Below, one piece after another: positions 12,172-43,877 of a stretch of 64,000 nucleotides of DNA (positions are counted from its first letter, which is position 1; the number at the start of each line of letters is the position of its first letter). The notes beneath the pieces were generated by a model. That model saw only the letters and a program-made list of their open reading frames with translations, was not told the origin of the DNA and did no database searches. The translations under genes and the position numbers were made by a program. This DNA is from Piromyces finnis finn (lineage: Eukaryota > Fungi > Neocallimastigomycota), in assembly GCA_002104945.1 (NCBI GenBank), contig MCFH01000029.1:434001-498000 (forward strand), read 5' to 3'.

Positions 12172-15100
12172 CTATAAAAGATATGGCCTCTCAATGACAG
12201 TTTTTTTATGCCACCAAAAGAATCGATAGCCCTCGTATCCATTTAAATAAATTTGTTTTGTAATTTCTGGGAATACAATAAAATAAACACCTAAAGGATG
12301 CGTAATAATAATACGCCACCACCTTCCACAAAGAATAATTGAACTTTTTATTCTATATAACCAAATACTAAAAATATTATTAATTAAAGATTTATTTTCA
12401 AAATAGTTTAAGGGAAGAGTAATTTTTTCATTATTTTCAGTATTATGAATTGAAAGGGTAAAGGATTTATTATCATGATTATCAGCTGATGTATTTAATG
12501 AGGAAGAAGATGATGATGAAGATGAAGATGAACTTGAATCAATATTAATTTCAATTTCATTTCCTGCTGTTCTTATTTTTTCAATAATGTTTGTTCTATG
12601 GTTTGATTTTGAATATGTACATTTATCTTTTTCACTACTTGAATTGAAATCCATTTCAATAACATGATCTTTATTACCACAAATAGTAGGTATCATAGAA
12701 TTATATTTTTCATGTTGATTAACTTTAACTACATCAGGAACAACAATCTTTGTTGATTCTATATTATTTGTAGAATTTTTAGAATCATCATTTAAAGAAA
12801 TTATTGATTTTGTTTCACATTGACCCATTGTATTTATTTCATACAAAGATTTACTTGGATTTTGCTCATTTTCATCTGATAATTCAAATGTTTTCATAAT
12901 TATGTATGGTTCATTAGATTGTTGATTATCATTAATTTCATATTTTTTCTGATTTTTCGATGTACAGGTAAAAGGCAGATGTTTTTCAGTCTTATCTATT
13001 TTTTTATATTCGTTCTTCATACCATTACAATAACCTTTAATAATACTATTAATAATATTAAATGATTTTACGGAATCAATGATAGGCCATAAAATACATT
13101 GGCATATTAAACACAATACTATACTTGATAATATTACTAGTAAATTAATAGCATTTCCTACGGTAAATAAAAAAATCGCACAAATAGTATAGCAAGTAAT
13201 AAGGAGAATCTCCATAACAACATAATATATAATATTATAGATTTTTCGAAGCCAAGTTGTTCCTTCACCACTCTCTCGATTAATTACAAAAAGCATGCTT
13301 TTAATAGATATAATAAAGAAATAAATAAACCATAAATAACATTTAATAATTGAAAATGGTAATAGAACAAATACAATCATGTTCATATAGATAAAGAGAG
13401 TAAAAAACGACACCATAGCCATATTAAAATTGCATATCTGAAATGATATTTGTTTTAAAAAGAAACTGCGATTACACCAATATAATAACTTTTTCTTCAA
13501 AAATTTTGTAAACTTACTATGGAAAAGATTATTTATACCATTATTTGAATTTTGTTGCTTTTGAGATAATTGTTTATCATTACTAGAATTTATTTTCTCA
13601 TTATTACAATTTTTATCTTTGGTTTCATCAATATATAAAGTATCTCTTGATAATTCATCTTTATTTGATCTCATATCAATCTTTGTTTTATTACTCCTTT
13701 CCATTTCAATTTTATCATTATCAAATACATCATTATCAGTATAAGTATCTTCATATCCCTATTTATGTTATAAAAATAAATTATTTATATTAACTATCAT
13801 GTTTCCTTTGAAGTATAATTAATTTTAATTAAAATTTTATCTTACATCATAATCATCTAATCCATAATATTTTTTATAAAGGAAGCAAAATCTTCTCAAC
13901 TGAATTGCACTATTCATCTATGAATTTTAATATTAAAAATTAATATTAAAAAATTTTTAAAGGTTATTTATTCAATATATTTATTCTTACAATAGCATAA
14001 TTATTTATTTCTTCAACAGTTTCTAAGTTTATATATAATTTTAATTTTGATTCACAATAATTAAAAATACTTTGGAATAGGAATCTAGATGAAGCTATTA
14101 ATAATGCAATCCAATCATACATATTATATTCATCTTGCTCTGGGAAATAACCATTATAACAATAAAATAATATTTGATAAAAGGAAATATAATCAACATT
14201 ACGAAGTACTATTTCCTTTGTTTGTTGTTCTTTGTATATATATGGATTTTCCATACTAAATATTTTTATAAAATAATCACTATGTGGATACAATATTTCC
14301 TCATGGATAAAGAATTTTATATTTTTTGTCTTTTCATCAACAATAAATTTTATATTGTTGTTTTCTAACATTTTTAGTTTGGCAAAATGAAAAAAATAAA
14401 TTCTTCAATTTTATTATACAAAAAAAAAAAAAATATTAAATATATTTGTACAATTTATATTTTTTCATACCTTTTGTAATGTTACATTTTCCTCTAATAT
14501 CTGTTAATAAATCATATTTATTTAATTTATCCATTTCTGGAATAATGATTGTATAGTTTTTTGTTTTTTCATCATTTAAATATAGATTATCGACACTAGT
14601 AAGTATATTTATATTTTCAATTTTTTCATTAAATGACTCTTCTGTTAATGGATCCTGGCATTTTTCTGTATATGTTTCTGTAATAATTTCTTCCGAACTA
14701 TTAACCATAATTTCAGTTTTATTTTCGTTTTCTTTTTTAATATCTGATTTACTATCATTCTTATATTTTTGATTAATATTATTATTTTCAAAAATATGAA
14801 GATCTACCGATTTCAATAATTTATGATCTACAATAAATTCAGGAATGAGAGTACAATTGAAATTAAATAATCTATATTTTGGATCATAGAGAGTATCATT
14901 GGAATTAACATAACCATGTCCAAACATATTTATAATCTTTACCTCATTGTCTTTAAAATTTTCTGTAATAAAATTGCCTTTTTAATTTTAAAGAATTGAT
15001 TAATAAATAAGCAATAATATAATAATAAACTTTCTATTAATTTAGATTATTTTACCTTTTATAACAGCCTTTAATATAAAGCCTGATTGTTTATATGCAG

Positions 15101-16872
15101 ATTCTGTTAAATTAACCCAATTAAATTTATATCTTTCTTTAACTTCTTCTTCATCCCTATTCATATCTAAATTTTGATTATCATTATCATTTTCATTTCT
15201 ATTATTGTTGTTGTTATTATTTTCTTGATTATTCTCGTCACTTAAAATATCAATTTGATCATATACTTCATCATAATAATTCTCATTTTCAGGAATTTTT
15301 TGCCATAAAAATGAATTATCTATCTCTTCATCATACTCTACTACAGGTATTCCATTAAAATGAATGCCTTTATCTAATTTATGAAATTTTATTATTTTAT
15401 TTTTCCTTTTTGGTTTTTTATAGTTATATCTATATCTTCTGTCCGTTAATATATCATCATCTTTAATAATACACAATTTATAATCATTTATTTTATCTTT
15501 TTTTAAATCTTGCTTTATTTTTTCATTTTTTCTTCCTGATATTTTTGTGTCATTTCTACTATCATCATTATTTGGATATATATTCTTTATTTCTTCTGCA
15601 TTTTCTGATTTATTTATTTTTTTGGAATAATTATAATTGATAACATTTTTTGTTAAACCGATATGGACATACCATGTAATAGAATCTATCGAAGCTAGAA
15701 ATTTATCAAAAATTTGAGAATCGGGATCATTCTGCATTACTTCTAATTGCATTGTTTCAATTAACATGTTTGATGGTCGAAAATCGAAAGACCATTCTAA
15801 TTCTAAAGTAAATGGTATTTTCGATGGATCTTTTAAAATGTATCCACTAAAGAAATTCATTAAATAAAAAAAAATTATATTTATAGAAATATATATTAGC
15901 TTTTATTTTTAATTAAAAATAATACTATTATATTAATAATAATTTTAAAACTTTTATTATGTACTATTTTAAATTTTTATGAATATTTAAACGAAGGTTT
16001 GATATTCCCTCTCTCCAGTTGGATTTAACTGTTACAGGAGGTGAGTTTTCGTAATATGAATCAAATGAGGTATTATAAAAGAATGAATAAGTATATCTAT
16101 CACGATTTCTAGTAGATTTTAAAGATAATGGAAGTGTAGGTCTTGCTCTATATTTAAAAAATTGTTTTTGCTTATCAATATCATTTTGAAACGAAATTGG
16201 TGTTGATGAAAATATATTTCCTATTTTATTTTCGTTATCTGTATTATTATTGTTGTTGTTGTTGTTGTTGTTATTGTTATTTCTAACAAGATTTAATATA
16301 TATTCATTACTATTATTCATTATATTTTGAGTTTCGTTCTTATATTCAATATTAGATGAATTTTCATTAGAATATTTAGTACCGTAATTTCCACTGTAAC
16401 AAGATACTCTAGGAGATACTATATCATTTAATACCAACAAATTATAGGCTTGTTGATACATTGTACCCTTAATATGATGCGTTTCTGACGATTTCTCATA
16501 TTCATTATTTAAATTATATTCGTTTAAAACTTCACCATTATTATTATTATTAAATTCGGATGTTTCATCTAAAGGATCAAAATTGATAGTACTATTATTA
16601 ATGATACTTGCATTGGTATCAATCTCATCTTGATTCATTAATAATAAGTTATTATCATTATTGATTTCTAATAGATCTTCATTTTCAAAGTTCCCTTCTT
16701 CCGAATTTGAGTTAAAATGTGAATGTGAGAAATTTATTGACGATTCAGAATTGAAATATGCAGCAATATTAGAATTATTAACCATTGAATTAATATTAAT
16801 ATTTTCGTTTTCATTTTCATTCTCTTGCTCACTAACATTTTCATTATTACTTTCTGTATTATTAAATCTCAT
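12172..16872 (-). CDS. ~1400-aa multi-exon protein: Asn-rich N-terminus, BTB/POZ + BACK-like domain, C-terminal multi-pass membrane region (joins five listed ORFs)
   Basis: Frame-consistent GT-AG junctions: 15056/14977 (phase 1), 14471/14364 (phase 1), 13991/13917 (phase 0), 13846/13758 (phase 0). BTB: IKFIVDE..KFFIHEEILYPHSDYFIKIFS..EIVLRNVDYISFYQILFYCYNG..LLIASSRFLFQSIFNYCESKL; BACK-like NSAIQLRRFC. The first junction (near 15990/15830) is uncertain. Confidence 0.72.
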
Positions 16873-17522: not shown

Positions 17523-17639
<117 letters not shown>

Positions 17640-17847
17640 GAATAACGAATTGTGATTATTTAAGTTGAATCTATTTGTTAATAATTATAGTTTATTATAT
17701 TTATTATAATAGACATTTAATATAATAAATTAATGCAATTGAAATTAAATATTTACATTGATTTTTAAATTATTTTAATATACTTGTTTTTTTTATTTTT
17801 GTTTTTGTTTTTTAATTTTGCGAATCTTAATTATCTGAATCAAAACT

Positions 17848-19713
17848 TTAATCTAATTCATTATCAGCTAAATCACCTTCATCTTCATCATCTTCAACAA
17901 TTTGAATTAAACCACTTTCACTACATTTTCTAATCAATTCTTGACCTTCTTCCTTTGTCATTTTAGCTAAGATGGCGTTAATATCATCTGGATCCATAGT
18001 AAGAAGAGCCTTTTGAATATCTGGAGTTAATGTAGCAAAAGTCTCAGCCTTCTTCTTTTCTTCTTCTGATGGGTTTTCATCCATTGGCCATATATATGTA
18101 CCATCTGGTTGTTCAGCAATCTTTAATCTAGCTTCAATTTGTCTCTTTTCTTCAGCTTCTTCAGCTTCACGCTTTTCTTTTAAGATTTTAACTCTGTTAA
18201 CAATATGATTATAAGTATTATTGACATCTTCCATAAACATTTGTTGAGCCTTTTCAAATCCAGTAATCATTCTCTTAAAGAAAAGTGAAATACCATCATT
18301 TCCTAAAGATTTACAATATTGAATAATTAAACTTTGTTGAACACATGAACGAGCATAGGCTGGTTTAGCATCCATTTGTGCATGGAAAGCTTCTGATAAA
18401 ATTTCATCTTGATATTTTTGATCAACAATTTCTGGATGTTCACCAATGAACTTGTAACTCTTTTCGAAATCATTAATATGAGAAAATTCTTTAGCTGGAC
18501 CATAAGTGATATATGATTCATCATCGTCTTCTTGTTCAATAATAACCTAATTTTTTTTTTTTTTAATAATTAAATTTTTAATATATTATATAAGAAAATA
18601 AAAATATATAAAATAAAAATTTAACTGCCATACTTTTTTTTCTTTATATATTTATTTAATTATTAATACTATAAATGCAACTTATATTATTTTAAATTAA
18701 AAATTTACCTTATCACTTTTTTTTGGTCTTGAGGTAGCTGATGGTGTATGAATTGTTTCAATAACTTTTTCTTTTTTTTGAGATTTTTCAGTCTTTTTTT
18801 CTTCTGGTTTTGGATTTTGTTTAGGCTTATTAATAATCTTTATTAATATAAAGCAATATTAAATTATATAATTATATAGAAAATTATTAAAAATTGTTAT
18901 TAAAATATTGATATTTAAAATGAAAATTATTTTATATAATAATATATAAATTTTCTATTCATTATGATAATTACAGTCTTATCAAAACCTCCAGAATACA
19001 TATTTTCTGAAGTAATTTTTTTATTTTGTTCTTCTCTTTCCTTTTCAATTTCCTTCTTGATAATAGTTTGTCTCTTTGAGATACGTTCAACAAGCTCATC
19101 TAATTCTTTTCTTAACCAAGTATTGAAATTGAATTCTGGATTTTCTTCTTTATGTTTCTTTAACTTTTCAGTTAAAGACTTAATGGATTCACCATATCTA
19201 ATTTTTGAATTTAAAACTTCATCTGGTTCTGGTGGACCCCATCTTGGATCTCTATCTGAATTCCACATAATAGCGACCTTTTTAATCATTTCTCTATCCA
19301 TATCATCAATTTGACTACATATACCCATAAAACTTTTTATTAATTCTACTACATTTTCTTGATCTGTTGAAAATTCTTTTAAAATCTTTGCAACTGAATC
19401 ATTTAAAGTAGTTTCTAATTCTAAAGTAGAAATTTTGTCTCTTCTTTCTCTACGTTGACGATGAAGAGCGGCTTGATGCCAACGAATCATTGAAGCTTTA
19501 TCAATGTTTGGACTATTTTATTTTATAATGATTTTTTTATTAGAATTTTATTTTTATTATTATATGTATATATTATTACATTTTTTATTTCTAAAAATTT
19601 TATATACAAAAACACATTATATCATATTCCTTTTCTCTTGATACATACTGACATTCAATATCTTCATCATCAGATATTTCAAGTTTATCCCATTTACTAT
19701 AATCAACAGGCAT
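17848..19713 (-). CDS. CDC37: Hsp90 kinase-targeting co-chaperone Cdc37 (4 exons)
   Basis: Exon 1 19713-19649 MPVDYSKWDKLEISDDEDIEC spliced to HPNIDKASMIRWHQAALHRQRRERR (19512-18975) is the Cdc37 N-terminal signature. Later exons give FSHINDFEKSYKFIGEHPEIV and CVQQSLIIQYCKSLGNDGISLFFKRM. Confidence 0.96.
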
Positions 19714-20341: not shown

Positions 20342-21810
20342 TTAACAATCTTTGTTAAAATTTATTTTCTCATTATTAGTTTCATTTGTTTCTTTCTTTA
20401 GCAAGATTCTCCTTTGTTCATTGTATTTTTGTACAAATTCATCGCAAGCTTCTTTAGTTTCAAAGAAAATAAGTAACTTTGTTATAGAGGTTTCAGAATG
20501 GTTACTTAATGAAAATCCTAAAATAGAATGACTATGATTAGTGCGTGGTTTTAAGTTACCATCAGTAGTTCCAGAACCCGATTCTCCTACTTTATTAAAT
20601 TTAATGGTTCTAGTGCTAGTAAATTCTACACTTTTGCTAACTGTATAGTTTAAAATATCTATACGATTTTCATAGGCATACTTATATTTTTTATTTTTCT
20701 TCTTATTCAATATAGCTGCTATAAGAACTGTATCACTAAATAAATAAATCTTTTTACGCTTATTCTTTAAGATTTCTGATATATTCCATTCACCTATAAA
20801 GCTTCTTTGAGTATAAGAAATAAGTTCTGGTGGATAGTTCATTATAGTTTTTTCAAGAGAGAACATTTTATTAATATTTTCTTGAATTCTCTTTGCATTA
20901 TTCATAATTTCACCAATTTCAAAAACATAATTTTCAACAGTATCTAAAAGATTATATGATTCTATGTTTTTTGGATTAGAGTCCTTTTTAATGCCTTCAA
21001 AAAGAAGACGGTATTTAAGGAATCTTTGAATAGGAAGAATAATCAATTCCTTGAGATGACTTCTATGGTGTTCTTCTGATTTTTGACATTGTTCCATGAA
21101 ACGGTTGAAACGATCAGTTTGTGGGGATTTTTTCAAATTTTCCAAGGTTCTGTTAGCAAAATGAAAATCTTCTACATATTTAATATAAATTTTCCATTCA
21201 CTAAATTTATTTAAAAATACAGTTGCAATAGGTATTGGACCTTCTTCATCATAATGAGTAAATGCTTCAGCTAATTCTTGATACAATTTATAACTGAATT
21301 CATATATATCAGGAATGTTTTTAAAAATCAACGAAATTTGTACTCTATTTAACATTTCATTTTCAGTATCGACAACAGATTCTAATGGTTTCATAAACTT
21401 TTCAATCATAATTCTCATTTTATCACTATAACTCTTTTCAGTTTCAACTAATTCTTGACAACGGTAACGATTAGCTTCCCATTTTTTCTTCAAAGTTTCT
21501 ACGTCCATTTGTTGTTGAAAACTAAATGAATCTTTGCTACTATAATCCATATCATTCTTATCCTCTCGAAATTCTTGGAATTTTTTAATAGCATCACGCA
21601 TAAGATATAAATTATTTTCTATATCACTCTTTGTTTTTTTAAAGGTGTCTTCTTGAAGATTTGGAATGGTTTTATAATATTCTAATAGCTTCTCAACAAT
21701 ACTTTGATCAATTTGACCATTTATACCATCAGTAACATCCTTATATATTGATAATTGGAACATAACATCATCATTATTATTATTGTTGTTGTTGTTGTTA
21801 TTACTACTAC

Positions 21811-21846
<36 letters not shown>

Positions 21847-23431
21847 TACTACTATTATTATTATTATTATTTGTTGAAACAACTGTATTTGTTGGTAGAA
21901 TAGGATCAGCAATAGCATTATTATCATCTAAATCTATACTACCATTACTATTATATATTGATTGGTTTATTTGTAAGTATGTATCATCATGATGTATTTC
22001 TTTATTATAAATTGATTCATATTTGCTTCTTTCTGCATCATCCATAATAATTGGTTCTAATTTACTTAAACAAAAGATACCTTGTTCACCCTTTGTAATG
22101 TTATAACCAGGATAATAATTATTATCTGCTTCTCTCAATAAAAATATCTGATCATCTACAGAAGCGAATTCCATTTCTTCTTTACAGCGGAAGAAAACGT
22201 AATTACCATCTAATGAATCAATATAATAAATTGGGAAAAGACCCTCGGCACCACTTGAGCAATTTTTACCTAAAATATATTTACCAGAAAATTGATTTAC
22301 TGTAACGGTATCATTTACTTGGAGATCAATATGAAAATCTTCTACTGCTTTAAACTCCTTTGTACAAACATATTTTCCAACAATACTGTCAATATCATCA
22401 TCATTGTCATCATCATCTTGTAAATTTGAACTAGATGTCATGGCTGAATGAGATGCATAAGATGTATTTCTATTTATGTCTATATCACGAGATGTCACTT
22501 CAAAATTATTTGATGAAATATCATTATTATAATTAACTATAGGTGAGTATATAGTTGTATCATTTACTAAATTAGAAGGTAATGTACTACTACGAATAAT
22601 AGTTCTATTATTACTACTATTTGAACTATAAGAATATGTTGCATTATGTTGAGGTAAGACAATGTTTGATTTTGGTGATTCAGAATAATTATATTTGTAA
22701 GTATCATTATATGGTATATTCGATGTAGAAATACTCTCAGATATCCTACTATCACTTTTTATTATTTTAATTTTTCAATTTATTGCGTATTTATTTTAAA
22801 AATAAATTAAATTAGATTATAGTAATAAAAAAAATTTTAGAAATTATAGTTCACTTTTATGTGAAATAATCATTTATATTTTAATAAATCATTAAATTCC
22901 TTTTATTTTTACCTTTGTTGATCTAAATCAAGTATATTAATACTTTCTGACTCTAATTCATAATATCTTTCATTGACAATTTTTGAGATTTTTTCATTAT
23001 ACATACGAATAACATCAACAAAATGTCTACCAAGATTATATCTTATCTTGCAATAACTTTCCCACTCTTTTTCTGTATAAGTATCCACTGTGATATTTAA
23101 AAAAAAAAAAAAATAATAAAAGTTTATGTTTAATAATTTGATTATAAGTTAATAAACATATATGCTATTTAAATAATAATTCAAAATTTCCTATAAAAAA
23201 ATTTACATTTCTTTTCCTTCAAGAAAAACATTGATTTTACTAGTAATTGAAGAGTTTCAATACAATCTTCTAAAGAAGCCTAAAATTAATTAAATTTATT
23301 AATAATTGAAATTTACACATTATTTGAATCAAAATATTATATTTTTAAAAATTATTAATATTTACAGTATCAATCTTGCTCTTTATAATCTCCAAATCTT
23401 TTAATACATTTTCCTCATTAATATTTAACAT
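20342..23431 (-). CDS. Dbl-family RhoGEF: short helical N-terminus, two SH3-like domains, poly-Asn linker, DH and PH domains (4 exons)
   Basis: ATG at 23431 (MLNINEENVLKDLEII) with three short exons, then a long terminal exon from ~22750. SH3: YVCTKEFKAVEDFHIDLQVNDTVTV..YILGKNCSSGAEGLFPIYYI; second SH3-like unit ends GYNITKGEQGIFCLSKL. DH: RYRCQELVETEKSYSDKM..IFKNIPDIYEFS..LKELIILPIQRFLKYRLLFEGIKK. PH: KRKKIYLFSDTVLIA. Confidence 0.9.
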
Positions 23432-25996
23432 TTTGATGTAATTTTCTTTAAATTAAATTCAAATTTTTATTTTTAAAATAGTATTCTTAATTTAAATAAA
23501 TATAAAATTAATAAATATTATATTTATTTTTATTTTTTGTTTTTTTTTTAAAGTTTGTATGTTCGTTAGTTTATTTTTTTGTTTTGTTTTGTTTTGTTTT
23601 TTTGTTTTTTTGTTTTTTGTTTTTTTGGTTAGTCTATTAAATAATTAAATTGTTGCAATTACTTATCCAGAATATTGGTTTTAAAAAATATATATACTAA
23701 TTTTATTATAATTCTAAATACTGGTTAATACGCTTTTTTATTTTGAAATTTATACATGGATTAATAATAATAAATATTAACATATATTATAAATAACAAA
23801 ATTCTTAATAAATAATCCAATATTTTTAATATCTTTTAGAATATTTATTTGTATTCGATTGTTACTGATATTATTGAATATCTAGAAAAAGTTTTTAAAC
23901 AACTTTACTACTTTTATTTTAATAATTTTTATTTTTACTTTTTTTTTTTTTAACTTTATATATTCTTTATATATTAATGTATTTTTTTTTTATAATTGTC
24001 TTTAAAATACATATATATATATATTTGTTTTTGTTTCTTGTTTTTGTTTTATTATTATTAATAATTATTATAAAGATTAATAAAAATATTTATTAAATCA
24101 TTTAATAAATTTATTAAATTTAAAAGAAAATTTAAAGAGGAAAAAATAAATAAGAACTAAAATTTATATTATAAGATCAAAAGTTCTTTATTTATTTTTT
24201 ATATCTTTTAGTTATTTTTCTTTTATTTTTTTCCTCTTTGTTTTTTCTTTCTTTTTAATTTTTTTCTGTCAATCTTTAAATTTATTTATATTTAAAAAAA
24301 AAAAAAAATTAATAAATAAAAAAAAAAAAAAAAAAAAAAAAAGAAATTTCAACTATAATATAACAAATTATAAAAAAAATATTTTAATGTATAATAAAAC
24401 ATAATCATATAATCAAATAACAATACTAAATAATTATATAACTAAAAAATTATAATTTAAAGTTATTGATCAATTATACGCCACATATAATTATAATTTA
24501 ATAATTATTTTTCAAAAATATCATAAATATTTAATACCCTAGCCATATTATAACATATAGTTATGTTTCACTAATATCCTAATGGATATTTACTATACTG
24601 ACATACTGACTTAACTTTACACTCTCACGTGATGTGTAATTATTTGAATAATTAATAAAGTTTAAATGTTAATAAACAATTTAAACAAAATTTAACAATT
24701 CTTATGCTATCATTTGAAATATAAAATATAATTAAGAGTTGGAGTATTAACAATTATAAGTATTTCATTCATAATTTTAAGGTAATTTATCAGTATCAGT
24801 AGAAATAGAAAAAAAAAAAAACCTCATTCCTTCACACAATAAATAAAATATAGTATATTTATTTACTTTTATAAAACAAATAATTTATTTGTTACAAATA
24901 TAAAATTTTTTAACTCTTCCACTATAATTTTTTTAGGGGGAAATTTAATGTAACATTTAATTTATTATAAAAAAAATATTTTTATAAAATTTTTATCAAC
25001 TATATACATAGTTATTATTAGTTAGTCATTTATAAAAAGTATTATAAAAAAATTTATAAATATAATAAAAGATTATTTTATAAAACTTTAAAATATGTAA
25101 TGATCTTCATACTTCATTTCATGATTATCACGTTGATTCATGATTATTTTAATTTTAATTTATTCTATGTATTATTAATTAATAAATTTTATTTATAATT
25201 AAAGTTTTTTCATATATCGAAAAAGTAATGACCAGTATTTGTAATTTTGTATATCAAAAAAAATGTATAAATTAAAATTCGATACAACTATATATTATAT
25301 TATATATTAATTTAAAAATAATATATCAAAATATAATACTGTAATAAATTTGTAATAAATTGATTATAAGCATTTCATTATTGTTTTAAATTATGCTATT
25401 TGTCACACTAAAATGAAAGTTAAATATAAAAATAAATTGAAAGATATTTTACCATTAATAATACCTACCAAAATTTAAACCTGCTACTAAAATGTTGGGA
25501 ATATTTTGATAAGTTATTTTTATATTACTACTATACTATCACTTATAATTATTTTAAGATATCACATTTATAGAAATTATCTTTAATTTTTTTTAAAAAT
25601 GATTATTATAATAACTATTAAATTTAAATATATTCAAAAGTAATGAAATATATATTAACACATACTTAAAACATTTACATTACTTAAAAGTATTCTTTAT
25701 TAAATAAATTTCAGTTTTTTTATTATTAATATCTATTAAGAAACAAATACAACTAGTTAAATCAGATGAAAAATATATCTTATATATAATAGTTCATAGT
25801 CTTCAATAATTATTGTATTTATATATATATATATATATATAATATAATATATATGTATTAAATAAGGTATTAATTTATTCAAAATAAAAAGAATTGTTGG
25901 TATCATGCAATTGTGCTATTATATTATATATATTATCTATCATTTATTAAGATATATTTTAATATTATATTTAAAAAAAAAAAGAGTGTGTGAGAC

Positions 25997-26612
25997 TTAA
26001 CCATATAAACGAATATAACATTCCTTACAATATGGTTTATCTTTATATTCTTTAAAACCAGAATTAGTATATAAAACTGTTTTACAAAAGTCACAGAAGA
26101 AATGATTTGGATGCCATCTTTTATTTAATGCAAATACATAACGTTTATCAACAGGTTTATTGCAATGGGCACAAAGTAAATTTTCTTTTTCTTGATAATG
26201 GAATTCACAGTAAAGTTCACAATCAATACAATAAAAAGCTTCATCACATAATGATTTATCACAAACCTAAATATATTAGAATGGATAAAAGTTTATATTT
26301 TAAAATAATTATTATATAAACTCTATGTGGTTTGGTATTCTTTTTTCAAAGTATATAGTTTTATATAAGAATGTTCATTTAAACTTACATGGCATTTAAA
26401 GCATTTAGTATGCCAATGCATATCCATAGCACTCATAAAATCTTCATCAATAACTTCATTACATCCTTGACAAATTTTACTAAATAATCTACTATAATCT
26501 TCTTCACAATATGGTTTTCCATCTATTTCAAAGAAAGGTTGTTCTTCCGAAAATTTACAACCACAATAAGAACAGAAGAAATGGTTTGGATGCTATAATT
26601 GAAAGTAAAATA

Positions 26613-26643
<31 letters not shown>

Positions 26644-26856
26644 GGTTATAATCATATTATATAATGTTTTGAAATACATTTTTTTTTATTAGTTTTAAAA
26701 AAAAGATAATTATTTTTATTATTTAATATATATAAACTTACCCAAACTTTATCTAATGCTTTAATATATAAATCCTATTTAGATATATAAATTTTAAAAA
26801 GAAAAATAATAATATATATTTAATAATATATAAAGAAAAAAATTATCTTATTTTTC

Positions 26857-26897
<41 letters not shown>

Positions 26898-27771
26898 TTA
26901 TTTTTCAAAAATAAAAAAAAAAAAAAAATATTTGTGTGTATATATATATATATATTATAGTAATAAATACCCCAAAAATTTCTTCATTACAATAACCACA
27001 ACGATTTTTTCCAAGATCGCATTCACTTTCAAAACAAACTTCACAATAAATATCATCTCCTAATTCAAGAATTTTACTTTGATCTAGTACTTTACCACAT
27101 TTTCTACATTGAACATGATCAACATGATAAAAGTTTTGACCTATCATAATCTTTTCATCACAAACTTTAATAACTTCATTACAATAATGACATTCTAATT
27201 CCAAATCTTTAACTTGCATCATTAATTCTTCTTGTGGAGAAGTTGGAACTTCAATATCTATATTATCACTAGCTGGAATAAGAATTGGATCCATACGATA
27301 AAGTTCTAATCTTCTAGCCTTTCTTACTTTTTTTGATTCTCCAAATGGATTTTGGGAATCTTGGTTATTGGATTGATTTGGATTTGGACGATCAAATGGA
27401 TTTTGATTACAAGTTTTATCTATATCATCTTCAAGTAATAACTTTTCTAATTTATTTCTAGCATCATTGTAATCATCTTTTAAATAAAAAAAATTTTTTT
27501 TTATTATCAAGAATATATATATGTATATATAAATTTAGTATTCATAACAGTTTTTTTTGATATATTCACGTTTTATAATATTTTGGTAATATTATATATA
27601 ATATAAAAAATTCACAAAGTTAAAATATATTGTTTATATTATTATTGTGTTTATTTATTGTGTTCGAAATTAAATGATATTAATATACATTTGGAAATTA
27701 AAAAAAAAAAAATATATTTTATTAATAATTGTTGATAATTATTTAATTAAAATAATACCTTTTGTTTCCAT
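25997..27771 (-). CDS. Paxillin-like protein with four C-terminal LIM domains (5 exons; further 5' exons up to ~28750 cannot be excluded)
   Basis: Exons 27771-27759, 27476-26971, ~26785-26752, ~26593-26390, ~26286-25997 splice in frame. Four LIMs (CHYC..HVDHVQCRKC..CEVC; CGYC..WHPNHFFCSYC..CEEDY; CQGC..WHTKCFKCHVC..CEFHY; CAHC..WHPNHFFCDFC..CKECYIRLYG*). The C-terminal CxxCYxxL(Y/F)G ending is paxillin-like. Confidence 0.87.
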
Positions 27772-27987
27772 TTTGTATATCTTCTTTTAATTATAAATAA
27801 TAAATGTTTTTTATTATTATTATTATAATTTTTATTTTTTTTTTTCTTTCAAATAATTAATATAAAAATGCACTATAATTTTATAAATTTATCAGGTTTA
27901 AAAACTTAATAAAGAAAATAAAGGAAAAAAAATGAAAAAAATAACCTTGCTCTACATTTTCTATAAAACATCTGTCGAAAACATATA

Positions 27988-28023
<36 letters not shown>

Positions 28024-29289
28024 TAAAATTCATTTTTTTACCTTTTGATTTCTAAATTTACAACTTATTAAAGTTTAAAAATGATGATGGGAAAATTTGA
28101 TATAATTTTATTTACTATTAAAATTTAATTTTCAATAAAGTTTAATTTATAATGAAAATTATTAATTATCCATCTATTTTTTTTTTTTTTTTTTATTAGT
28201 AAACAATAATGTGTATATATTTATATTTTATAAATTAATATAAATAAGATATTATTAATATTATAATTTATTATATAATATGCTTTATAAGAGTATTATA
28301 AAAGCAATATATAATATAAATAACTAAGAATTTTTTTTTTTATTATTAATGAAAGTAGTTAAATCTTTAAAAACTGAACAAAAATAAATAAAAATAAAAA
28401 TGGATAATACATTCTAATTAAAAAAAAAAAAAATAAATAAATAAATAATCGTAAAATGTATTCTGGTAATATGGTAATCCTAATTAGAAAAAAAAAAAAA
28501 AGGTATTGATATAATATTTTTATGAAATTTATTAGAGATAAGATTATAATCAATATTGATTATGATTAATTATATTGTTATCATTATTAATCAATAACAT
28601 AAATCATTATTTTGATAAAAAGGTTCTTCCTCAAGAATAAAGATACCATCTAAATACTTGATTTAGTTTGATATAATGTTTTTATTATTATTATTATTTT
28701 ATTTCCTTGAATTTCTATTGTCAAAACTTAAGGTGACTGAACACTTTCTTTCTAACACTAAAACAATTAAAACTACTACTATTTACTAAATGAACAAAGA
28801 ATTATTATATATACTAAAAGAATTACATTTTAATAAAGCAACAAAAAAATAAAATAAAAAAAAGAGAGAATAAGAAATAAAAGCAAATTTAATTTTATAT
28901 TTTCATTGTATTTATTAAATTTATTTTTACTACTTTTTTTTTTTTTAAAATTATTTTTATTCTTAATCTAATTATTATTAAATAATAATCGTAGTAATAA
29001 TGGTTAAAATAATAGTATATTATATTATGAGATTTAATAAGAAAATGATATTTGTTTTTAATAGTAGTATATAATATATATATTTTTAGTTTTTGAAAAA
29101 AATAAAATAAAATGATACATACATAATATTTCTAAATTATCTTTGTATTTAGTTTAATATATTTTTGCTTTTTTTTTTTTTTTTTATTTATTTATTTATT
29201 TTTATTTATTTATTTATTTATTTATTTATATAGGCTAATTATTTTATTTCATTTTATTTCATTTTATATTAATTGAAAATTTACCACTT

Positions 29290-31117
29290 TTAACCCAATA
29301 ACTCAAGTAAATCACGAACAAATACTGCAATTTCATATGACGCTGAAGCTAAACTAGATTTTAAAGATTTAATTTCTTGTTCGCCCATATTTGGTATAGA
29401 AGCACCCATTTCCTTTAAGTGGTAATTACTAAATTAAATTTAAAAATAAAAATATTTAAGCATTCATTAATATTTATTTTAAAATATATTTTTTATATAT
29501 AAAAAATATATATCATCAAATTATATTATTTAATCCCTACCCTCTCTTTAAATCTTGAAGAATTAATTCTATTTAATTAAATGAATAATAATTTATTATT
29601 TAACATATTGGATTTAGGAAACATTTAAATTTTTTAAAAATTAGTATTGTTGTAATTATTTTTAAAAAATTGACATCTTTCTAAATTTTTTTTTTTTTAA
29701 TTTACCTCCATTTTCATATAAATGAATACCAGCTTGGCTTGAGAATGTATTTTGTGAAGCACCAATGACATTGTCAACAATGTCAGTAATATAAGCAATG
29801 GAAGAACTAAATTCTCCATTAGAAGCATTTGGTTGTTGAATCTTTTGTAAAAGAGATTGAATTCCTTGAACAATTAAATCAGTCTTTTCTTCCAAGAAAG
29901 CCTACAGAATAATCATTATAATTATTGAATATTTATTAATACAATATTACTATAGTAATTTTAATATATTAGTTTTAATTTTTTTTTTTTTTACCTTTAG
30001 TTCATGAACATTATAAACTTGTTCATTATTTGGAGTATATTCACCCATATTCATTGTTTCTATAATAAAATCAATAATAGATATATATAAATTATCACAT
30101 TATTATTTGTATAAAATATTTTATTATAGACATTAATATAAAGCATATATTTATATTTACTTGGATTAATTGGTGGTAATTGTTGTTGAAGTGGTGTTAA
30201 TTGTTGATTTGATGATTTATTACTTTGAATACCTAATATTCTATTTTGATGTTCCTTTAAAGTACGAACTAATGAAACAATTGTAACTGAAAGATCAGAT
30301 GTAGCACTTTCAATGAAGGATGGGGAAACATCTGGATAACGAGTAGCATGATTCTTAGTTGCATTCATTAAATGAGTAAGAGCAACAGAGAGTCTTTCCT
30401 TAATTTCAATAATCTTTTCTTGTTCCTCAAAAGTAAATTTGTTTTCATTTAATCTTTCATATTCATCAGATTCTTCTGTAATATTCTTACATGTAATAAC
30501 AATTGATTTCATAGCAACTAAAACATCGGCTGGATTATCACTCCTTCATTAAGGAAATAATAATCGCAAATAATTTATTATTTTGAAGATGATGATGAAT
30601 AAAGAAGTTGCATTTATATTTTAAATAATACTAAAAAAAATATTATATATAAATAGTACATTAAAATTTATAATTTAAAAAACTTACTTTGAGGCACTGA
30701 GTAATTCATTAACAGCTTCTTTGTAATTATTAAATCTTTCTGGATTAATACAATCCCTAATAGAAGGACTATTCTGGATTTCTTCATCTTCTTGAATTGG
30801 CTTGGTTGGAGTTGAACTTGAAACTGGAGCTGGTTTGATTTCATCTTCCTTCTTTTGTGGCTCTTCTGGTTCTTTCTTTGGTGTTTCTGGTTTGACTTCT
30901 TTTTCATTTACTTCAGTCTTTACTGGAGTTGGTACTTCAATTATCTTTTCAATTATTTCTGGTTTCTTTTCTTTTTCTTTCTTTAATTCTTCCTTTAACT
31001 TTTCAATTTCTTCTTTTAAATTTTTGTTTTCATTTTCTAATTTTTCATTTTTCTTGGTTAATTCATTAATTTTTTCAATTTGACTATCATTTTCTTGACG
31101 TAATTCTTCAGTAATCT

Positions 31118-31150
<33 letters not shown>

Positions 31151-32852
31151 AAAAGATTATATATAAGTAATCATTTCCTTGTTTTTTTTTTTTTTTTACA
31201 GTAATAATAATAATAATATCTCAATATATTTACTTTTTCATTAACTTCTGTTTGACTACGGAAAGTTTTAATATCATTTTGTAATTGAGTGTAATTCTTA
31301 TATAACTTGGAATATTCTGTAGCATTTTCTTCATTAATCTATATTTATTTATTTAATATTTAGTAAATTAAGTACATATGAATTTTTGCTTATTTTAAGA
31401 GTTCTTACCTTAACACGGTTGGTTAAGGTTTCTTGTACACTTTCTAATTCAGCTTCTAATCTACTCTTTTCAGTCTATATCAATAATAATTTTAAGTTGT
31501 ATAATATATATTTAATACTATATGTTATTATCATCCTTCATATTATGATAAAATTGGTGAATTAAATTATTAAAACCTACAGAATATTTTTCGTTTAAAG
31601 TATCTAATTTTGTTTTTAAATTAAGATTAGCTTTTCTTAATTCAGCAACTTCAATATCGACAGCTTCTTTATCCTAATGACATATTGTTTAAACAATAAG
31701 TTATTAATTAATTTTTTCATGTTAAAAAAAGTAAATAGTACTTCAAAAATATTTACTTCAGCAGTATTTTGACCTTCATTTTCATTTTTGTAATTTAATT
31801 CTTTAGCTAAATTAGCCATAACATCATCTAATGGAGCAAAATTAATTTTTTGATTTGGGGTTTGTTGTTGTTGTTGTTGTTGCTGTTGTTCAGGCATTAA
31901 ACGTTGATTTTGTATATATGGACTTTGACCTTGTTTTAAATTATCATTGTTATTATCCATAGCTTTTTTAATAAATAGATATTTGTTTTATTACAAAATG
32001 CATAAATATAATTAATATCTTTTATAACAGTAACAATAAAAACATAAACTACTTACTATTATTAACTGGAGACATATGATTATTAAATTCACTTTGATTT
32101 TCCTATTAACAAATAAATTAATGAATTATAAGTTTGTTTATTTCTATTTCTTACTAATCATTATATTTTTATACATTCTATAGTTATAATAACTAACATT
32201 TTCAATCTCCGTAATAATGTTTGGGAAACGTCTTTGAATTTCATTATAAATATCTTGAGATAAATCCTTTAAATTTATAATAATAAAAATTACATTAAAT
32301 TTTAATATTTAAAAAAAATGCAATATATAATTTTAGAGCTATTTGTTAATTACTCTAAATCTTGGTTGAGAAAGTGCAGCTAATTTTGCACGAGCTTCAT
32401 TTCTTTTAGGTTGAAATTCTGATTGACTCTGTAAACATTCAGATTCTTTAGTTTAAAAATATACATATAATATATATATGGTTTAATTTAACATAATGAT
32501 TAATGAAATATTTATATGGATATAATTAAATTTTATTTTTTATTTTTTTTTACCTCTAGAATTATAAGTTCTTCTAATCAATTCATCATAAACATCAGTT
32601 GATAATTCTTGGAATTGTTGATTTGTTAATTTAATAAGCTTTTCCTTGGCACCTCTTTGTCTCTTAGAGTCTTTTTATTTTAATATTTATCATTATGTAC
32701 ATATTTATAAATGAATAATTATTAAAAACATTTATCAAATTATATTAATTGAATTAATTTGATTGTTTACCGTTTTCTTGACTTTCTAAGAATTTTCTAA
32801 AAGCAAGATAGTGAGTTTTAATAATGGCTGGTGAATAAAAATCGTTGGACAT
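29290..32852 (-). CDS. SPA2: Spa2/GIT-like polarity scaffold: two Spa2-homology (SHD) repeats, coiled coil, two helical-bundle domains including a GIT1_C-like C-terminus (many exons)
   Basis: ATG at 32852. SHD1 AKEKLIKLTNQQFQELSTDVYDELIRR; SHD2 KRNEARAKLAALSQPRFRDLSQDIYNEIQRRFP. C-terminus LIVQGIQSLLQKIQ...LASASYEIAVFVRDLLELLG* resembles GIT1_C (ITKKIQELL...AYDIAKAAKQL). Junctions checked through the N-terminal half and the last exons are GT-AG and in frame. Confidence 0.85.
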
Positions 32853-37629: not shown

Positions 37630-39375
37630 ATGAAAACAGCTTTATTTGCTTATTTCTTTTTAATATCCCTTGCATGGATTAATGTTGCTTTTGGTGCTGG
37701 TGCCAATTCATTTAATGGTGTCACTATTGGAAAGTCATTAAAGCCACTTACCAATCACAACCCATTAATGACTTATAGATACGGTGCTGACCCAGGTGTT
37801 TTTGTATACGATGGTAGAGTTTATGTCTTCACTACAAATGATGGTGATGTTGACCTTACTAACAAAAATATTGCAGAAAACACTTATTCACACATTCAAA
37901 CCCTTAATCTTATTTCTTCTGCTGATTTAGTTAATTGGACCGACCACGGTTCTATTAGTGTTGCAGGTAATAATGGTGCTGCTAAATGGGCTCAATATTC
38001 ATGGGCTCCATGCGCTACCTACAAAAAGATTAATGGTAAAGATAAATTCTTCCTTTACTTCGCTAATAATGCTAATGGTATTGGTGTTTTAACTAGTGAT
38101 TCTCCAACTGGTCCATGGAAGGATCCAATTGGTAAGGCACTTATTACTCGTCAAACTCCAAACTGTAATGTCGAATGGTTATTCGATCCAGCTGTATTTG
38201 TTGATGATGATGGTAAAGGTTATCTTTACTTTGGTGGTGGTGTTCCAACTGGTCAAGATGCTAATCCAAAGACTATTCGTGTCGTTCAATTAGGAGATGA
38301 TATGACTAGTATTGTTGGTACCCCACAATTAATTGATGCTCCATACGTTTTCGAAGATTCTGGTATTAATAAGATCGGTAACACTTATATTTATTCTTAC
38401 TGTACTAATTGGGCTAATGGTCCATATGGTAGTGCTAATATTGCATACATGACAAGTAGCAGTCCAATGGGTCCATTCAAAATGCAAAAATCATGTTTCA
38501 AGAATCCAGGTGAATACTTTGGTAACTATGGTAACAACCATCACACTATGATTGAATTCAAGGGTAAAAACTACATTTTCTACCACACTGAATGGCTTAA
38601 TAAGGAAGTTTTCGGTACTCAAAAGGGTTATCGTACTTCTCATGTTGATGAAATGCCAGTTGTAAATGGTGGTTATGGTATGGCTAAGGGTACTCTTACT
38701 GGTGTTCAACAATTAGAAGATGTTGATGGTACTAGTCTTAATTTAGCTGCTTCATTTGCTTGGCAAAGTGGTATCAAGATTAAGGGACAAGGTGCAGTTA
38801 CTACCGTTGAAATTCCACGTGGTGGATGGACTGGTGTATCTCACGTTGCTCTTGGTAATGCTAAATCTATTACTATTAAGGCTAGCTCCTCTTCTGGTGC
38901 CACCATTAAGGTTTGTACTGGTAATGAAAAGGGTGATGTCCTCGGTTATGTTGAAATTCCAGCAGGTGGTTCTTTACAAGAAGTTACTGCTGAAATTTCT
39001 AATGCTTCAGGTACTAAGGATCTCTTCTTTGTTGCTTCTAATTCTGTTTCTATGGAATCATGGCAATTAAAGGGTAATAACAACAGTAGCAGTGGTAACA
39101 GTGGTGCTGGTTGTTGGTCTACTGCTTTCGGTTACAGCTGTTGTAAGTCATGTGGTCCAGTTTACTTCACTGACGAAAGTGGTAACTGGGGTATTGAAAA
39201 TGGTGACTGGTGTGGTCTTTTAAGTTCATGTTCTCAAGGTGCCTCTCAACAATGTAAGGGTGCTCAAGGTTATCCATGCTGTTCTTACTCTTGTGAATCA
39301 TACATGACTGATAGTGATGGTGACTGGAGTGTTGAAAATAATGATTGGTGTTTAATCAACAAGAACATTTGCTAA
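37630..39375 (+). CDS. Secreted cellulosomal GH43 (XynD-like arabinoxylan arabinofuranohydrolase/xylosidase) + CBM6-like module + two fungal dockerin domains; intronless
   Basis: Signal peptide MKTALFAYFFLISLAWINVAFG. GH43 motifs YGADPGVFVYDGRVY, WAP, LFDPAVFVDDDGKGYLYFGG, FEDSGINK, GNNHH. CBM6-like GGWTGVSHVALG..GTKDLFFV. Dockerins CWSTAFGYSCC..YFTDESGNWGIENGDWCG and CKGAQGYPCC..YMTDSDGDWSVENNDWC. Confidence 0.95.
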   Translation: MKTALFAYFFLISLAWINVAFGAGANSFNGVTIGKSLKPLTNHNPLMTYRYGADPGVFVYDGRVYVFTTNDGDVDLTNKNIAENTYSHIQTLNLISSADLVNWTDHGSISVAGNNGAAKWAQYSWAPCATYKKINGKDKFFLYFANNANGIGVLTSDSPTGPWKDPIGKALITRQTPNCNVEWLFDPAVFVDDDGKGYLYFGGGVPTGQDANPKTIRVVQLGDDMTSIVGTPQLIDAPYVFEDSGINKIGNTYIYSYCTNWANGPYGSANIAYMTSSSPMGPFKMQKSCFKNPGEYFGNYGNNHHTMIEFKGKNYIFYHTEWLNKEVFGTQKGYRTSHVDEMPVVNGGYGMAKGTLTGVQQLEDVDGTSLNLAASFAWQSGIKIKGQGAVTTVEIPRGGWTGVSHVALGNAKSITIKASSSSGATIKVCTGNEKGDVLGYVEIPAGGSLQEVTAEISNASGTKDLFFVASNSVSMESWQLKGNNNSSSGNSGAGCWSTAFGYSCCKSCGPVYFTDESGNWGIENGDWCGLLSSCSQGASQQCKGAQGYPCCSYSCESYMTDSDGDWSVENNDWCLINKNIC

Positions 39376-40319: not shown

Positions 40320-41009
40320 ATGGAATACAAACCAATTGAAAATAAAATAGATATTTCTGATGAAGAGGATTCCTATTCCTTGGATAGTGAAAACCATAAT
40401 ACTACACATAACATTGTAAATAATGAAAATACAGTAATTGATATTAATGACAATGAACTTCTATATGAAGACAATGATAGTGAAATAGAAAATGCTAAAA
40501 AAGAAAAAGCCCGTATTGGATTTTTCAAACAATTTTTAATAAAAAAAGTATATAAGACAGGGTTAATAGGTTATATTTCACTGGTTTCTTTTAATATTAT
40601 TTATAGTGTAATATTTGGAAGTTTTTTAGAAAATATACAAAATTCAAATGAAGAAGATATAAATGAAATGATTAAATTACATCCAGTGATGATGATGACT
40701 TATGCTTGTATATTTGCACCAATGATTGAGGAATTTGTTTTTAGAAAATTGATGTTTGGATTTATAAAGCGATACTCAAAAATTTTAGCATATATTATCT
40801 CTTGTTTCTTTTTTGCATTCGGTCATTTTGGATTTAGTTTTACTATCCTTTTAAATGAAATAGGTTTTTTCCCAATATATTTCATTGCCGCTGCAATTTT
40901 AGCATACATTTACGATTATGATGGATACATTTTAGCATCAATGATTGCACATATGTTATATAATAGTACTATGTTAGTATTAGGAAGTTTGCTTGAAGAA
41001 GAAATATAA
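40320..41009 (+). CDS. CPBP/Abi (type II CAAX-like) intramembrane glutamic metalloprotease; intronless
   Basis: Family motifs IFAPMIEEFVFRK (EExxxR), FFAFGH (FxxxH), ASMIAHMLYN (HxxxN), with several hydrophobic segments. Confidence 0.9.
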   Translation: MEYKPIENKIDISDEEDSYSLDSENHNTTHNIVNNENTVIDINDNELLYEDNDSEIENAKKEKARIGFFKQFLIKKVYKTGLIGYISLVSFNIIYSVIFGSFLENIQNSNEEDINEMIKLHPVMMMTYACIFAPMIEEFVFRKLMFGFIKRYSKILAYIISCFFFAFGHFGFSFTILLNEIGFFPIYFIAAAILAYIYDYDGYILASMIAHMLYNSTMLVLGSLLEEEI

Positions 41010-41562: not shown

Positions 41563-43569
41563 CTATTTTTCTTTTTCTTTTAATTTTTGTTGTGTTAAAT
41601 AATAATCCTTAACAGCTTCAAATGGGATCTATAAAGTTTTAATAATAATAGGAATTAATTCATTATTTAATTATTGTATTATTATGTAAGAATTATAAAA
41701 TTCATATTACTTTATGATCGGATTTTTTTTCGTATTGGGTTTCACGATCATACGTTTGAATATTGAAGGGTGAGTTTATGAAACCTTTTAATTCATAAAT
41801 AAAATGGTTAGTTTTATCTTTTAAAAATAAAGAAATTTCATCCATGGCTTCCTCTGAATCTAAATCATACCTAGTTTTTACCAATATTCAATATATATAT
41901 ATATATATATATATAATGTTTGTTATTGTTTATTATCCTTATTTTTTCTTTCATCATGTCATATATTACCGTTTTATTATACGAAGAATAAAATCACGAA
42001 TAAGATCTATTTCATCTGTATGTAATATAGCTTTAATATCTCGTTCAACCCAAGGTATTATTCTATCAAATTTTGCTTTATATTTTGTTAAGTATTCTAA
42101 ATCTTTTTTTTTTTTTTTATAATAAAAAGTATATATTATAGATTAAAGATTTAATATAATGATTATTATATATATTTATATATTGTAAATGTATAATACA
42201 AACAAGTTTGACTTTCTTTTAAAACTTTATATTTTTCAGGTTGTTTTGAATATAAACCTTGAGTATATATTTTACTTTTGATAGCAGACAATTTTAAATT
42301 AAAAACATTAATAAAAATATTTAAAAAAAAAAAAAAAAAAGATATTTATTAATTATATTTTTAAAGTTTTCTTTTAGAAAATGATGTATGTATAAATATA
42401 CCTTCGATAGTCAATACCATCTTTATTATTTTTGTTATTTGATAATGAAAATAAAGAAGGGTAAGAATATTGATGGTTTCTAGGGTATATTTCTTTCCTT
42501 GATTGTAATTATTATATTGATATAGATATTTTAGTATTACATCATTCATTCATTTTTTTTTAAAAAAAAAAAAAAAAAAAAATTTGGTTTTTAAACCTTT
42601 TCGGTTTTTGGTGTTGAATTTCACCTTCTCCAAAGTATATCTAATTTGTATATTATATATATGAATATATGTACACGTTATTCAATAATTATTTAAGCCT
42701 TTTTAAAAGGAATTACAAAAGCTTTTATAGTATTTAATATTATTATTTTTTTTTTTTACTTTATCATAGGTATATTCATCTTTTATATTGTAAATAGCAA
42801 AATCATAATGTCGTTTACATAAAGGACAATTCTGTGATACTTTGGACCATTTTTTAATACAAACATTACAAAAAGCATCTAATAAAAAATAAAATCATAC
42901 ATATTAGAGACTTTTAGGATTATTTAATTATATATTTATTTTTATAATTCAAATTAACAATTCAAACATATTAATTGAACTACGTGCATATATTTAATAA
43001 AATTAATGAGAAGATTAATTAAATATAAGGAAACAAACATAAATAAAATATGAAATTTCAAGAAAATATATATTTGAATAATGAAATTTCACATTTTAAA
43101 ATTCACATTTGAAATTTCAAATTTGGATTTTAAAATTCTGTATATATATATACTAATTTAAATTGAAGCGTGATAAGTAAAAATAATAATGTCATTAAAT
43201 TTAATATTTAGAATAGGTGAAAAAAAAAAAAAAAAAAAAAAAAAAGAATGAATTACGATAACAAGGATCTAATAAAGTTTTATTTAAAAAGGATTCTAAA
43301 CAAATTGGACAAGTTATTAAATAGTCGTCATCATCAGTGTCATTTTCAGTATTTTTATTTTTTTCTTTTGGATTATCAATTTTTATTTTTTTAATATTTG
43401 AATTTTCAAATGTTTCCGAGAGTTCATGAGGCCTTTTATTTTTTTGATATTTACTATCTAGTTTTTCATAATCTAGAGTTGAAATGTCTAAACCTTGACC
43501 TTCTTCTGAATCATAGGAATTATCTTCAGTCGATTCTGAATTTAAATATTCCTGATAATAATTGGACAT
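41563..43569 (-). CDS. Topors-like C3HC4 RING E3 ubiquitin ligase (multi-exon)
   Basis: Exon 1 ends CPICLESFLNKTLLDPCY and splices to HAFCNVCIKKWSKVSQNCPLCKR (~42880-42760). Downstream exons give RIIPWVERDIKAIL and FLKDKTNHFIYELKGFINSPFNIQTYD, typical of the Topors-like/PWI-like region. Middle exons are not fully resolved. Confidence 0.8.
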
Positions 43570-43788
43570 TATTTTCTTTTAATTTTTTTTAAAATACTAT
43601 TTTAAATATATATACATATTTACTATATTACTAATTTTTTTAACAAAGTAGAAAAAAAAAATTTTTTTAAATACTATAAAGGAAACCACTTAATTAAAAA
43701 TTCTATTTTTCTTTATATATTTTATAAGAATTTGAAATCAAAATTTATTATGGTAATAATTTTATTAATAATTTTATTAATAATTTTA

Positions 43789-43793
43789 TTCAT

Positions 43794-43836
<43 letters not shown>

Positions 43837-43877
43837 TGTATGTATGTATGTATGTATGTATGTATGTATGTATGTAT

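Follow-up and report, generated by a model that had tools for sequence, protein, structure and literature searches.

Do three neighbouring genes of the gut fungus Piromyces finnis form a physically linked signalling module, or do they lie side by side by accident? On contig MCFH01000029.1 (assembly GCA_002104945.1), genes for a Rho guanine nucleotide exchange factor (RhoGEF, hereafter GEF), a four-LIM paxillin-like protein (LIM) and a Spa2-type scaffold are consecutive on the minus strand; they lie within a window of 64,000 nucleotides (contig positions 434,001 to 498,000), which is the whole stretch analysed here and supplies all coordinates below. All three are deposited in GenBank as hypothetical or LIM-domain proteins. 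An earlier note, made from the sequence alone, had likened them to the animal partners PIX, paxillin and GIT, and proposed that this early-diverging fungus may keep the three as a cluster. If true, a PIX-GIT-paxillin cluster in an early-diverging fungus would be a rare case of a physically linked eukaryotic signalling module, and would shed light on how the machinery of adhesion and polarity arose. That proposal did not survive comparison with other genomes, as the linkage to the GEF is absent in Anaeromyces and Neocallimastix; the trio is very probably a chance adjacency created by lineage-specific rearrangement, and not a conserved PIX-GIT-paxillin module.

Table 1. Positions of the trio, its domains and its neighbours in the 64,000-nucleotide window
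Feature	Window coordinates	Strand	Remarks
1334-aa (amino acid) gene, family unassigned	12172..16638	-	syntenic with GEF-CDC37 in 4/4 gut-fungal genomes examined
CDC37	17848..19713	-	GEF neighbour, kept in 4/4 gut-fungal genomes examined
RhoGEF gene, 908 aa (P0001)	20342..23431	-	helical N-domain, tandem SH3, DH, PH
PH-like domain and C-terminal helix, aa 757-907	20348..20800	-	AlphaFold2 (AF2) beta-sandwich; Pfam PH sub-threshold
DH (RhoGEF) domain, aa 523-741	20846..21502	-	Pfam RhoGEF 2.9e-31
Tandem SH3, aa 232-339	22052..22375	-	AF2 pLDDT 90, two five-stranded modules
Intergenic junction of two ancestral synteny blocks	23482..25871	.	A/T-rich low-complexity; tblastx collinearity ends on both sides
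Four-LIM paxillin-like gene	mRNA 25872..27905, coding sequence 25997-27771	-	six exons, spliced RNA contigs
R-L-E-L-Y motif codons, LIM aa 60-64	27582..27596	-	partial match to the Spa2-SHD1-binding five-residue motif
Short transcribed piece between Spa2 and LIM	28454..28833	.	RNA contigs of 238-337 nt, 3 runs
Spa2 orthologue, 682 aa (P0046)	29290..32852	-	SHD1, coiled coil, VBS_C3G9, GIT1_C
GH43 + CBM6 + 2 x CBM10 (dockerin) gene	37630..39375	+	between Rce1-like and Spa2, P. finnis only; Pfam
Rce1-like CAAX protease gene	40320..41009	+	syntenic with Spa2 in Anaeromyces
Topors-like RING/PWI gene	41708..43569	-	syntenic with Spa2 in Anaeromyces and Neocallimastix; tblastx, neighbour annotations

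The adjacency itself is as the earlier note described it. Between the three genes we found no annotated gene, no credible open reading frame (ORF) on either strand, no tRNA and no Rfam match, and the coding parts stand out as bumps in a window whose GC content runs from 12 to 30%. The same gene order, Spa2-LIM-GEF-CDC37, recurs in P. sp. E2, and among the gut fungi examined these two Piromyces species are the only ones in which the trio was found.

Outside Piromyces, the GEF keeps other company. In both Anaeromyces robustus and Neocallimastix lanati, the GEF is followed, as in P. finnis, by CDC37 and a large unknown gene, but it is preceded by a DNA methylase gene; both loci are gap-free, and a tblastn search of the 10 kb that precede the GEF detected neither LIM nor Spa2 sequence in either species. 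On the other side of the trio, three Neocallimastix assemblies share the order Topors-like, Spa2, LIM and EF-hand gene, with Spa2 and LIM co-oriented; in N. lanati, LIM (1,035,576) and GEF (1,144,836) lie on one scaffold and one strand, about 107 kb apart. In A. robustus, the series Topors-Rce1-Spa2 is followed by genes for a small secreted protein and a hevein-like protein, with no LIM gene within 10 kb of Spa2; the Anaeromyces LIM candidates (P0031, P0032, P0035) are known from short metatranscriptome contigs only. Of the linkage whose conservation the earlier note had suggested checking, the Spa2-LIM part thus holds in Neocallimastix, but the GEF is unlinked or distant and Anaeromyces has no LIM gene at its Spa2 locus. 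The Spa2-to-LIM adjacency predates the split of Piromyces and Neocallimastix and is broken in Anaeromyces. Farther afield, no LIM neighbour was found at the Spa2 loci of Synchytrium, a Lobulomycetales metagenome-assembled genome, Gigaspora or Calcarisporiella, and the Basidiobolus locus is uninformative downstream, its contig ending 644 bp past Spa2.

When the loci of relatives were aligned by tblastx with the whole window, two collinear blocks emerged that meet at 23.5-25.9 kb, in the interval between LIM and GEF. Block 1 comprises Topors (43.5-41.7 kb), the Rce1-like gene (40.3-41.0 kb), Spa2 and LIM, whereas block 2 comprises the GEF, CDC37 and the 1334-aa gene. The junction holds no ORFs and no Rfam match, and a repeat search returned low-complexity repeats only. 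We propose that two ancestral blocks, Topors-Rce1-Spa2-LIM and GEF-CDC37-1334-aa gene, the latter preceded by the DNA methylase gene in the other genera, would have been joined here in the Piromyces lineage. Neither the methylase nor the EF-hand gene of the relatives has a tblastx match within the 64-kb P. finnis window, and the DNA methyltransferase gene was either relocated or lost in Piromyces.

Is the older Spa2-LIM pair kept better than one would expect of any neighbours at this locus? It is not: since unrelated adjacencies are conserved at least as widely—GEF-CDC37, CDC37-1334-aa gene and Topors-Spa2 are each kept in 3/3 genera, Spa2-LIM in 2/3—the Spa2-LIM pair is retained no better than the microsynteny around it. 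A candidate for deeper synteny, the pairing of Spa2 with the EF-hand gene, was rejected, as a filtered tblastx search of the Neocallimastix EF-hand gene against the Synchytrium Spa2 locus gave no match; the same search without low-complexity filtering returned AT-rich noise.

Transcripts give no sign of a shared unit either. The RNA data consist of assembled contigs only, from which expression levels are not comparable. Contigs of the LIM mRNA terminate at 25872 and 27905, those of Spa2 and the GEF are separate (the 5' untranslated region (UTR) of the GEF extends to at least 23481, with RNA contigs over 23400-23481), and no RNA contig bridges LIM to either neighbouring gene. That the genes are in tandem orientation and have mRNA contigs of their own speaks against a common promoter or a polycistronic transcript. 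Two metatranscriptome contigs, L017 (3-1031) and L022 (2712-4322), carry a second long ORF beside Spa2 that differs from its genomic neighbour; we considered them as operon-like transcripts and rejected this, given the mismatched partner, and they are probably chimeric assemblies. The short transcribed piece between Spa2 and LIM consists of 28454-28498 and 28617-28833, one contig skipping 118 nt with non-canonical ends; it contains no ORF of at least 45 aa and may belong to a distal Spa2 3' UTR, represent an alternative 5' exon of LIM or be a small non-coding RNA.

The product of the GEF gene does not resemble PIX. The DH domain of the GEF matched, among solved structures, ECT2 (2e-16), Vav (1e-15) and collybistin/Asef (1e-11) far ahead of PIX (1by1, a partial match at 0.002), which ranked about 50th of 55 solved DH matches. 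Its Atlas look-alikes were ARHGEF9, ARHGEF16/19 and kalirin by language model, and ECT2-like, ARHGEF39 and FGD proteins by structure, with no PIX cluster among them. Partners of Spa2 and GIT bind the groove of the Spa2 homology domain (SHD) through the motif (V/I)(I/L)(D/S)(L/A)Y, which beta-PIX carries (PMC12831199, 2026); neither in strict nor in relaxed form does this motif have a conserved match in 11 GEF orthologues. The earlier note had remarked that a PIX-type C-terminal tail was lacking, and rightly so: in the AF2 model the protein terminates at residue 908, at the end of the C-terminal helix of the PH domain, leaving no room for a GIT-binding or coiled-coil tail, and Pfam gave no betaPIX_CC match. 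With PIX it does share SH3 followed by a DH-PH core, though with two SH3 domains in place of one.

An exhaustive HMMER search with the GEF yielded 3738 matches at E<=1e-3, in which the orthologues are followed by gut-fungal paralogues and then by SH3+RhoGEF proteins of Spizellomyces, Powellomyces, Geranomyces, Quaeritorhiza and Sorochytrium (1e-37 to 1e-42); none of these nearest SH3+RhoGEF relatives contains a CH, betaPIX_CC or BRCT domain. Two of the chytrid relatives (P0101, P0102) bear the automatic name 'Protein T2', which may be 'Protein ECT2' with its 'EC' stripped by annotation clean-up, and would then fit ECT2 as the best PDB match. Because its DH domain is remote from that of PIX, it has neither SHD-binding motif nor C-terminal tail, and its relatives are zoosporic-fungal, we assign the GEF, as judged from sequence, to a zoosporic-fungal SH3(-SH3)-DH-PH family, and regard it neither as a PIX orthologue nor as an evident analogue.

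The architecture of the GEF is also richer than the SH3-DH-PH order first read from the sequence: these domains are present, but AF2 and Foldseek point to two SH3 domains, not one, and to an additional helical N-domain. The gene's reading frame is 100% identical to P. finnis BCR36DRAFT_330113. Its SH3 region falls below the Pfam threshold (0.002), yet Foldseek matches this beta-region best to tandem SH3 structures, those of STAC1/2/3, sorbin and p47phox, and in the PDB its sequence profile matches nothing but SH3 domains (the region was folded alone by AF2 as aa 225-350, and the model of the whole GEF was built on 17 orthologues). Alignments of the DH-PH core to Vav, collybistin and Trio structures run through the PH-like region, and Atlas structural matches span 527-900; the protein also has a disordered linker of about 180 aa. 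At the N-terminus, aa 1-96 (window 22912-23431) form a conserved three-helix domain (AF2 pLDDT ~85) followed by a disordered stretch. This 96-aa domain has no Pfam match, and could serve dimerisation or targeting as a module peculiar to this family of GEFs. The best sequence and feature matches of the protein are collybistin/ARHGEF9, Asef/ARHGEF4, the ephexins ARHGEF16/19 and ECT2/Vav, among which the SH3-DH-PH type likewise places SH3 upstream of DH-PH; unlike these Dbl GEFs, the P. finnis protein has a STAC/p47phox-like tandem SH3 and the helical N-domain, and its closest relatives are uncharacterised zoosporic-fungal GEFs. In SH3-DH-PH GEFs, the SH3 domain typically autoinhibits or targets the GEF.

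For the scaffold, the reading of Spa2-homology repeats with a GIT1_C-like end proved sound. Pfam detects GIT_SHD (1e-24, in two stretches), VBS_C3G9 (2e-30) and GIT1_C (8e-13), with SHD1 at about aa 10-115 and GIT1_C at aa 564-679, and neither ArfGAP nor ankyrin appears in the Pfam results for P0046 or P0047. The three domains are also found together in proteins of Chytridiomycota, Glomeromycota, Zoopagomycota, Basidiomycota and Ascomycota, under the names 'component of the polarisome', 'cell polarity protein' and 'SPA2'. The best PDB match is a fungal Spa2-like SHD (6lag, 4e-20), against only 0.007 for GIT2 (6jmt), and no solved GIT FAH domain was matched. Because the three domains recur across these five phyla and 6lag is matched far better than GIT2, the scaffold is the P. 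finnis orthologue of Spa2, which in fungi is the homologue of GIT; that homology is textbook knowledge, restated recently (PMC12831199). Like Spa2 of Saccharomyces cerevisiae and Schizosaccharomyces pombe and SpaA of Aspergillus nidulans, it combines SHD1, a central coiled coil, VBS_C3G9 and a GIT1_C-like end, although at 682 aa it is shorter than most Dikarya counterparts (900-1200 aa in the proteins compared here). The SHD and the GIT1_C-type end recall animal GIT, which differs in having ArfGAP and ankyrin domains.

The description of the LIM protein as paxillin-like with four LIM domains was likewise upheld, once its gene model was corrected. The deposited P. finnis model (P0036) is a truncated product of 227 aa that begins inside LIM1; spliced contigs from 4 runs in 3 studies define instead the exons 27862-27905, 27759-27795, 26970-27476, 26742-26773, 26387-26592 and 25872-26264, including a short 5' exon that carries the ATG (at 27771) and a micro-exon of 32 nt (26742-26773). 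The resulting product of 341 aa has four LIM domains (Pfam LIM x4, 1.2e-49), and orthologues measure 341-357 aa. Its best solved match is paxillin LIM2-3 (7qb0, 1.3e-26), ahead of PINCH (3e-16), with paxillin LIM4 and leupaxin also matching, and one source names the Neocallimastix orthologue 'paxillin'. It is thus a paxillin-family protein, short, with four C-terminal LIM domains like those of paxillin itself. Unlike animal paxillin, it has no Pfam Paxillin/LD region, and in place of several LD motifs (LDxLLxxL) it shows a single LD-like stretch, weak at best, at its N-terminus.

That N-terminus, about 110 aa long, is mostly variable in the orthologue alignment, with two conserved blocks. The first, R-x-K-[LF]-[DE]-K-L, reads LEKLLLED in P. 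finnis, which is LD-like, and FDKLGL in other genera. The second, RKLELYRMDPILIP, with E, Y, R, P, I, I and P invariant, lies in disordered sequence.

How, then, might the trio have arisen and what might it do? Under the reading we prefer, a rearrangement would have brought together three ordinary cytoskeleton and polarity genes that are separately transcribed, each protein presumably doing the job of its family: Spa2 would scaffold polarised secretion at growth sites, the paxillin-like protein would act as an actin- and Rho-linked adaptor, and the GEF would activate a Rho-family GTPase, its SH3 pair targeting or autoinhibiting it. The three products may still meet at rhizoid tips or division sites, as family knowledge suggests, and nothing indicates a functional role for the adjacency itself.

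Several points tell against this reading or limit it. In P. sp. E2, the order depends on scaffolding over two N-gaps, 2.1 and 5.6 kb long, and the shared scaffold and strand of GEF and Spa2-LIM in N. lanati mean that a loose linkage may be ancestral. Metagenome contigs L013-L016, whose LIM gene shares about 77% of its nucleotides with that of P. finnis, introns included (L013), have a methyltransferase after LIM, which is suggestive only; L013, from a close relative, reaches just 4.4 kb downstream, so a GEF beyond is possible. For any one named pair, the chance of a paxillin-family gene lying directly downstream of Spa2 is about 2/gene number, and two genera in which the rest of the local gene order has changed still have Spa2-LIM. 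GIT1_C and paxillin, the homologous animal domains, bind each other, and a conserved [KR]LELY block of the LIM protein resembles the SHD1-binding motif.

The alternative that fares best is one in which only the Spa2-LIM pair matters: its products would bind through GIT1_C and the LD-like stretch or through SHD1 and [KR]LELY, the adjacency would have been kept since the Piromyces-Neocallimastix ancestor, where linkage or a shared chromatin context would favour balanced expression, and the GEF would be an incidental newcomer. In 2 Piromyces and 3 Neocallimastix assemblies the two genes are neighbours in one orientation, with 1.4-1.9 kb between them, Spa2 has a GIT1_C domain to set beside a paxillin-family partner whose disordered N-terminus offers an invariant block and a weak LD-like motif, and conservation of the SHD1 motif extends from yeast to human (PMC12831199). 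We nevertheless consider this alternative unlikely. Anaeromyces breaks the adjacency, Synchytrium, Lobulomycetales, Gigaspora and Calcarisporiella do not have it, and the block's unrelated neighbours are kept no less well. [KR]LELY agrees with the SHD1 motif at 3/5 positions, with K/R for V/I and E for D/S; the relaxed pattern was written after the sequence had been seen, and 5.7% of shuffled LIM protein sequences contain it. Conservation of the LD-like motif stops at Piromyces-like sequences, and no direct Spa2-Pxl1 binding was reported in the S. pombe study (PMC4294673). The specific proposal that a [KR]LELY helix docks in the SHD1 groove of Spa2, and/or the LD-like stretch on the GIT1_C bundle, with linkage kept since the same ancestor, strikes us as a long shot; the motif is a lead, not evidence.

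That all three genes make up a selected, functionally linked polarity module, a PIX-GIT-paxillin analogue kept as a gut-fungal cluster, is very improbable. Speaking for it, P. finnis, and P. sp. E2 at the level of scaffolds, have the three next to each other in one orientation, the domain logic of the three resembles PIX-GIT-paxillin, and in S. pombe the SH3 domains of Cdc15/Imp2 bring Spa2, Pxl1 and the RhoGEF Rgf3 to a common site (PMC4294673). Against it, the GEF is unlinked in Anaeromyces and far from the pair in Neocallimastix, the junction marks the ends of two synteny blocks, the GEF has no SHD-binding motif, C-terminal tail or PIX-like DH affinity, the transcripts are separate, and deletions of S. 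pombe spa2 and pxl1 show no genetic interaction (PMC4294673).

In S. pombe, spa2, pxl1 and rgf3 are not known to be clustered, and Rgf3 is a GEF of another type than that of P. finnis. The Cdc15/Imp2 SH3 network of that yeast, which includes Spa2, Pxl1, Rgf3, Fic1, Pos1 and Art1, does offer a precedent for a Spa2 protein, a paxillin-like LIM protein and a RhoGEF at one cortical site, the division site, but there the members are joined by F-BAR SH3 domains, not by mutual binding (PMC4294673). Among gut fungi, a four-LIM paxillin homologue of the same kind was described in 2016 from Orpinomyces sp. C1A as transcribed at all life stages and upregulated in zoosporogenesis and germination; that sequence is 5'-partial, and its gene neighbourhood, Spa2 and GEFs were not considered (PMC5042518).

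The surroundings of the trio have changed in other ways. The methylase is a DNA (cytosine-5) methyltransferase gene that, in Anaeromyces and Neocallimastix, immediately precedes the GEF (L002 3564-6631; L005 1-2109), and CDC37, co-oriented with the GEF in Piromyces and Anaeromyces, is inverted relative to it in N. lanati (L005 14844-16937), a local inversion within a conserved block. The GH43 gene between the Rce1-like gene and Spa2 is single-exon and, with a GC fraction of 0.38, richer than its surroundings; because no GH43 gene occurs in the equivalent interval of the Anaeromyces locus (L023), it appears to be a cellulosome-type enzyme gene inserted in one lineage. Long TTTA/TTATT-type microsatellites, which translate as LFIY repeats, occur in the intergenic DNA of all three genera (in the window at 17480-17650 and 43760-43990; in the relatives' loci at about 18680-18815 of L008 and 22720-24504 of L023), and cause spurious tblastx matches.

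With the trio read as a recent accident of rearrangement, the significance that a cluster would have had falls away. What remains is a corrected model of the gut-fungal paxillin homologue, with its full length, all four LIM domains and a micro-exon; the placing of the GEF in a tandem-SH3-DH-PH family common to other zoosporic fungi; and the hypothesis that SHD1 or GIT1_C of Spa2 binds the N-terminus of the paxillin-like protein. If true, such binding would be a fungal counterpart of the GIT-paxillin coupling of animals.

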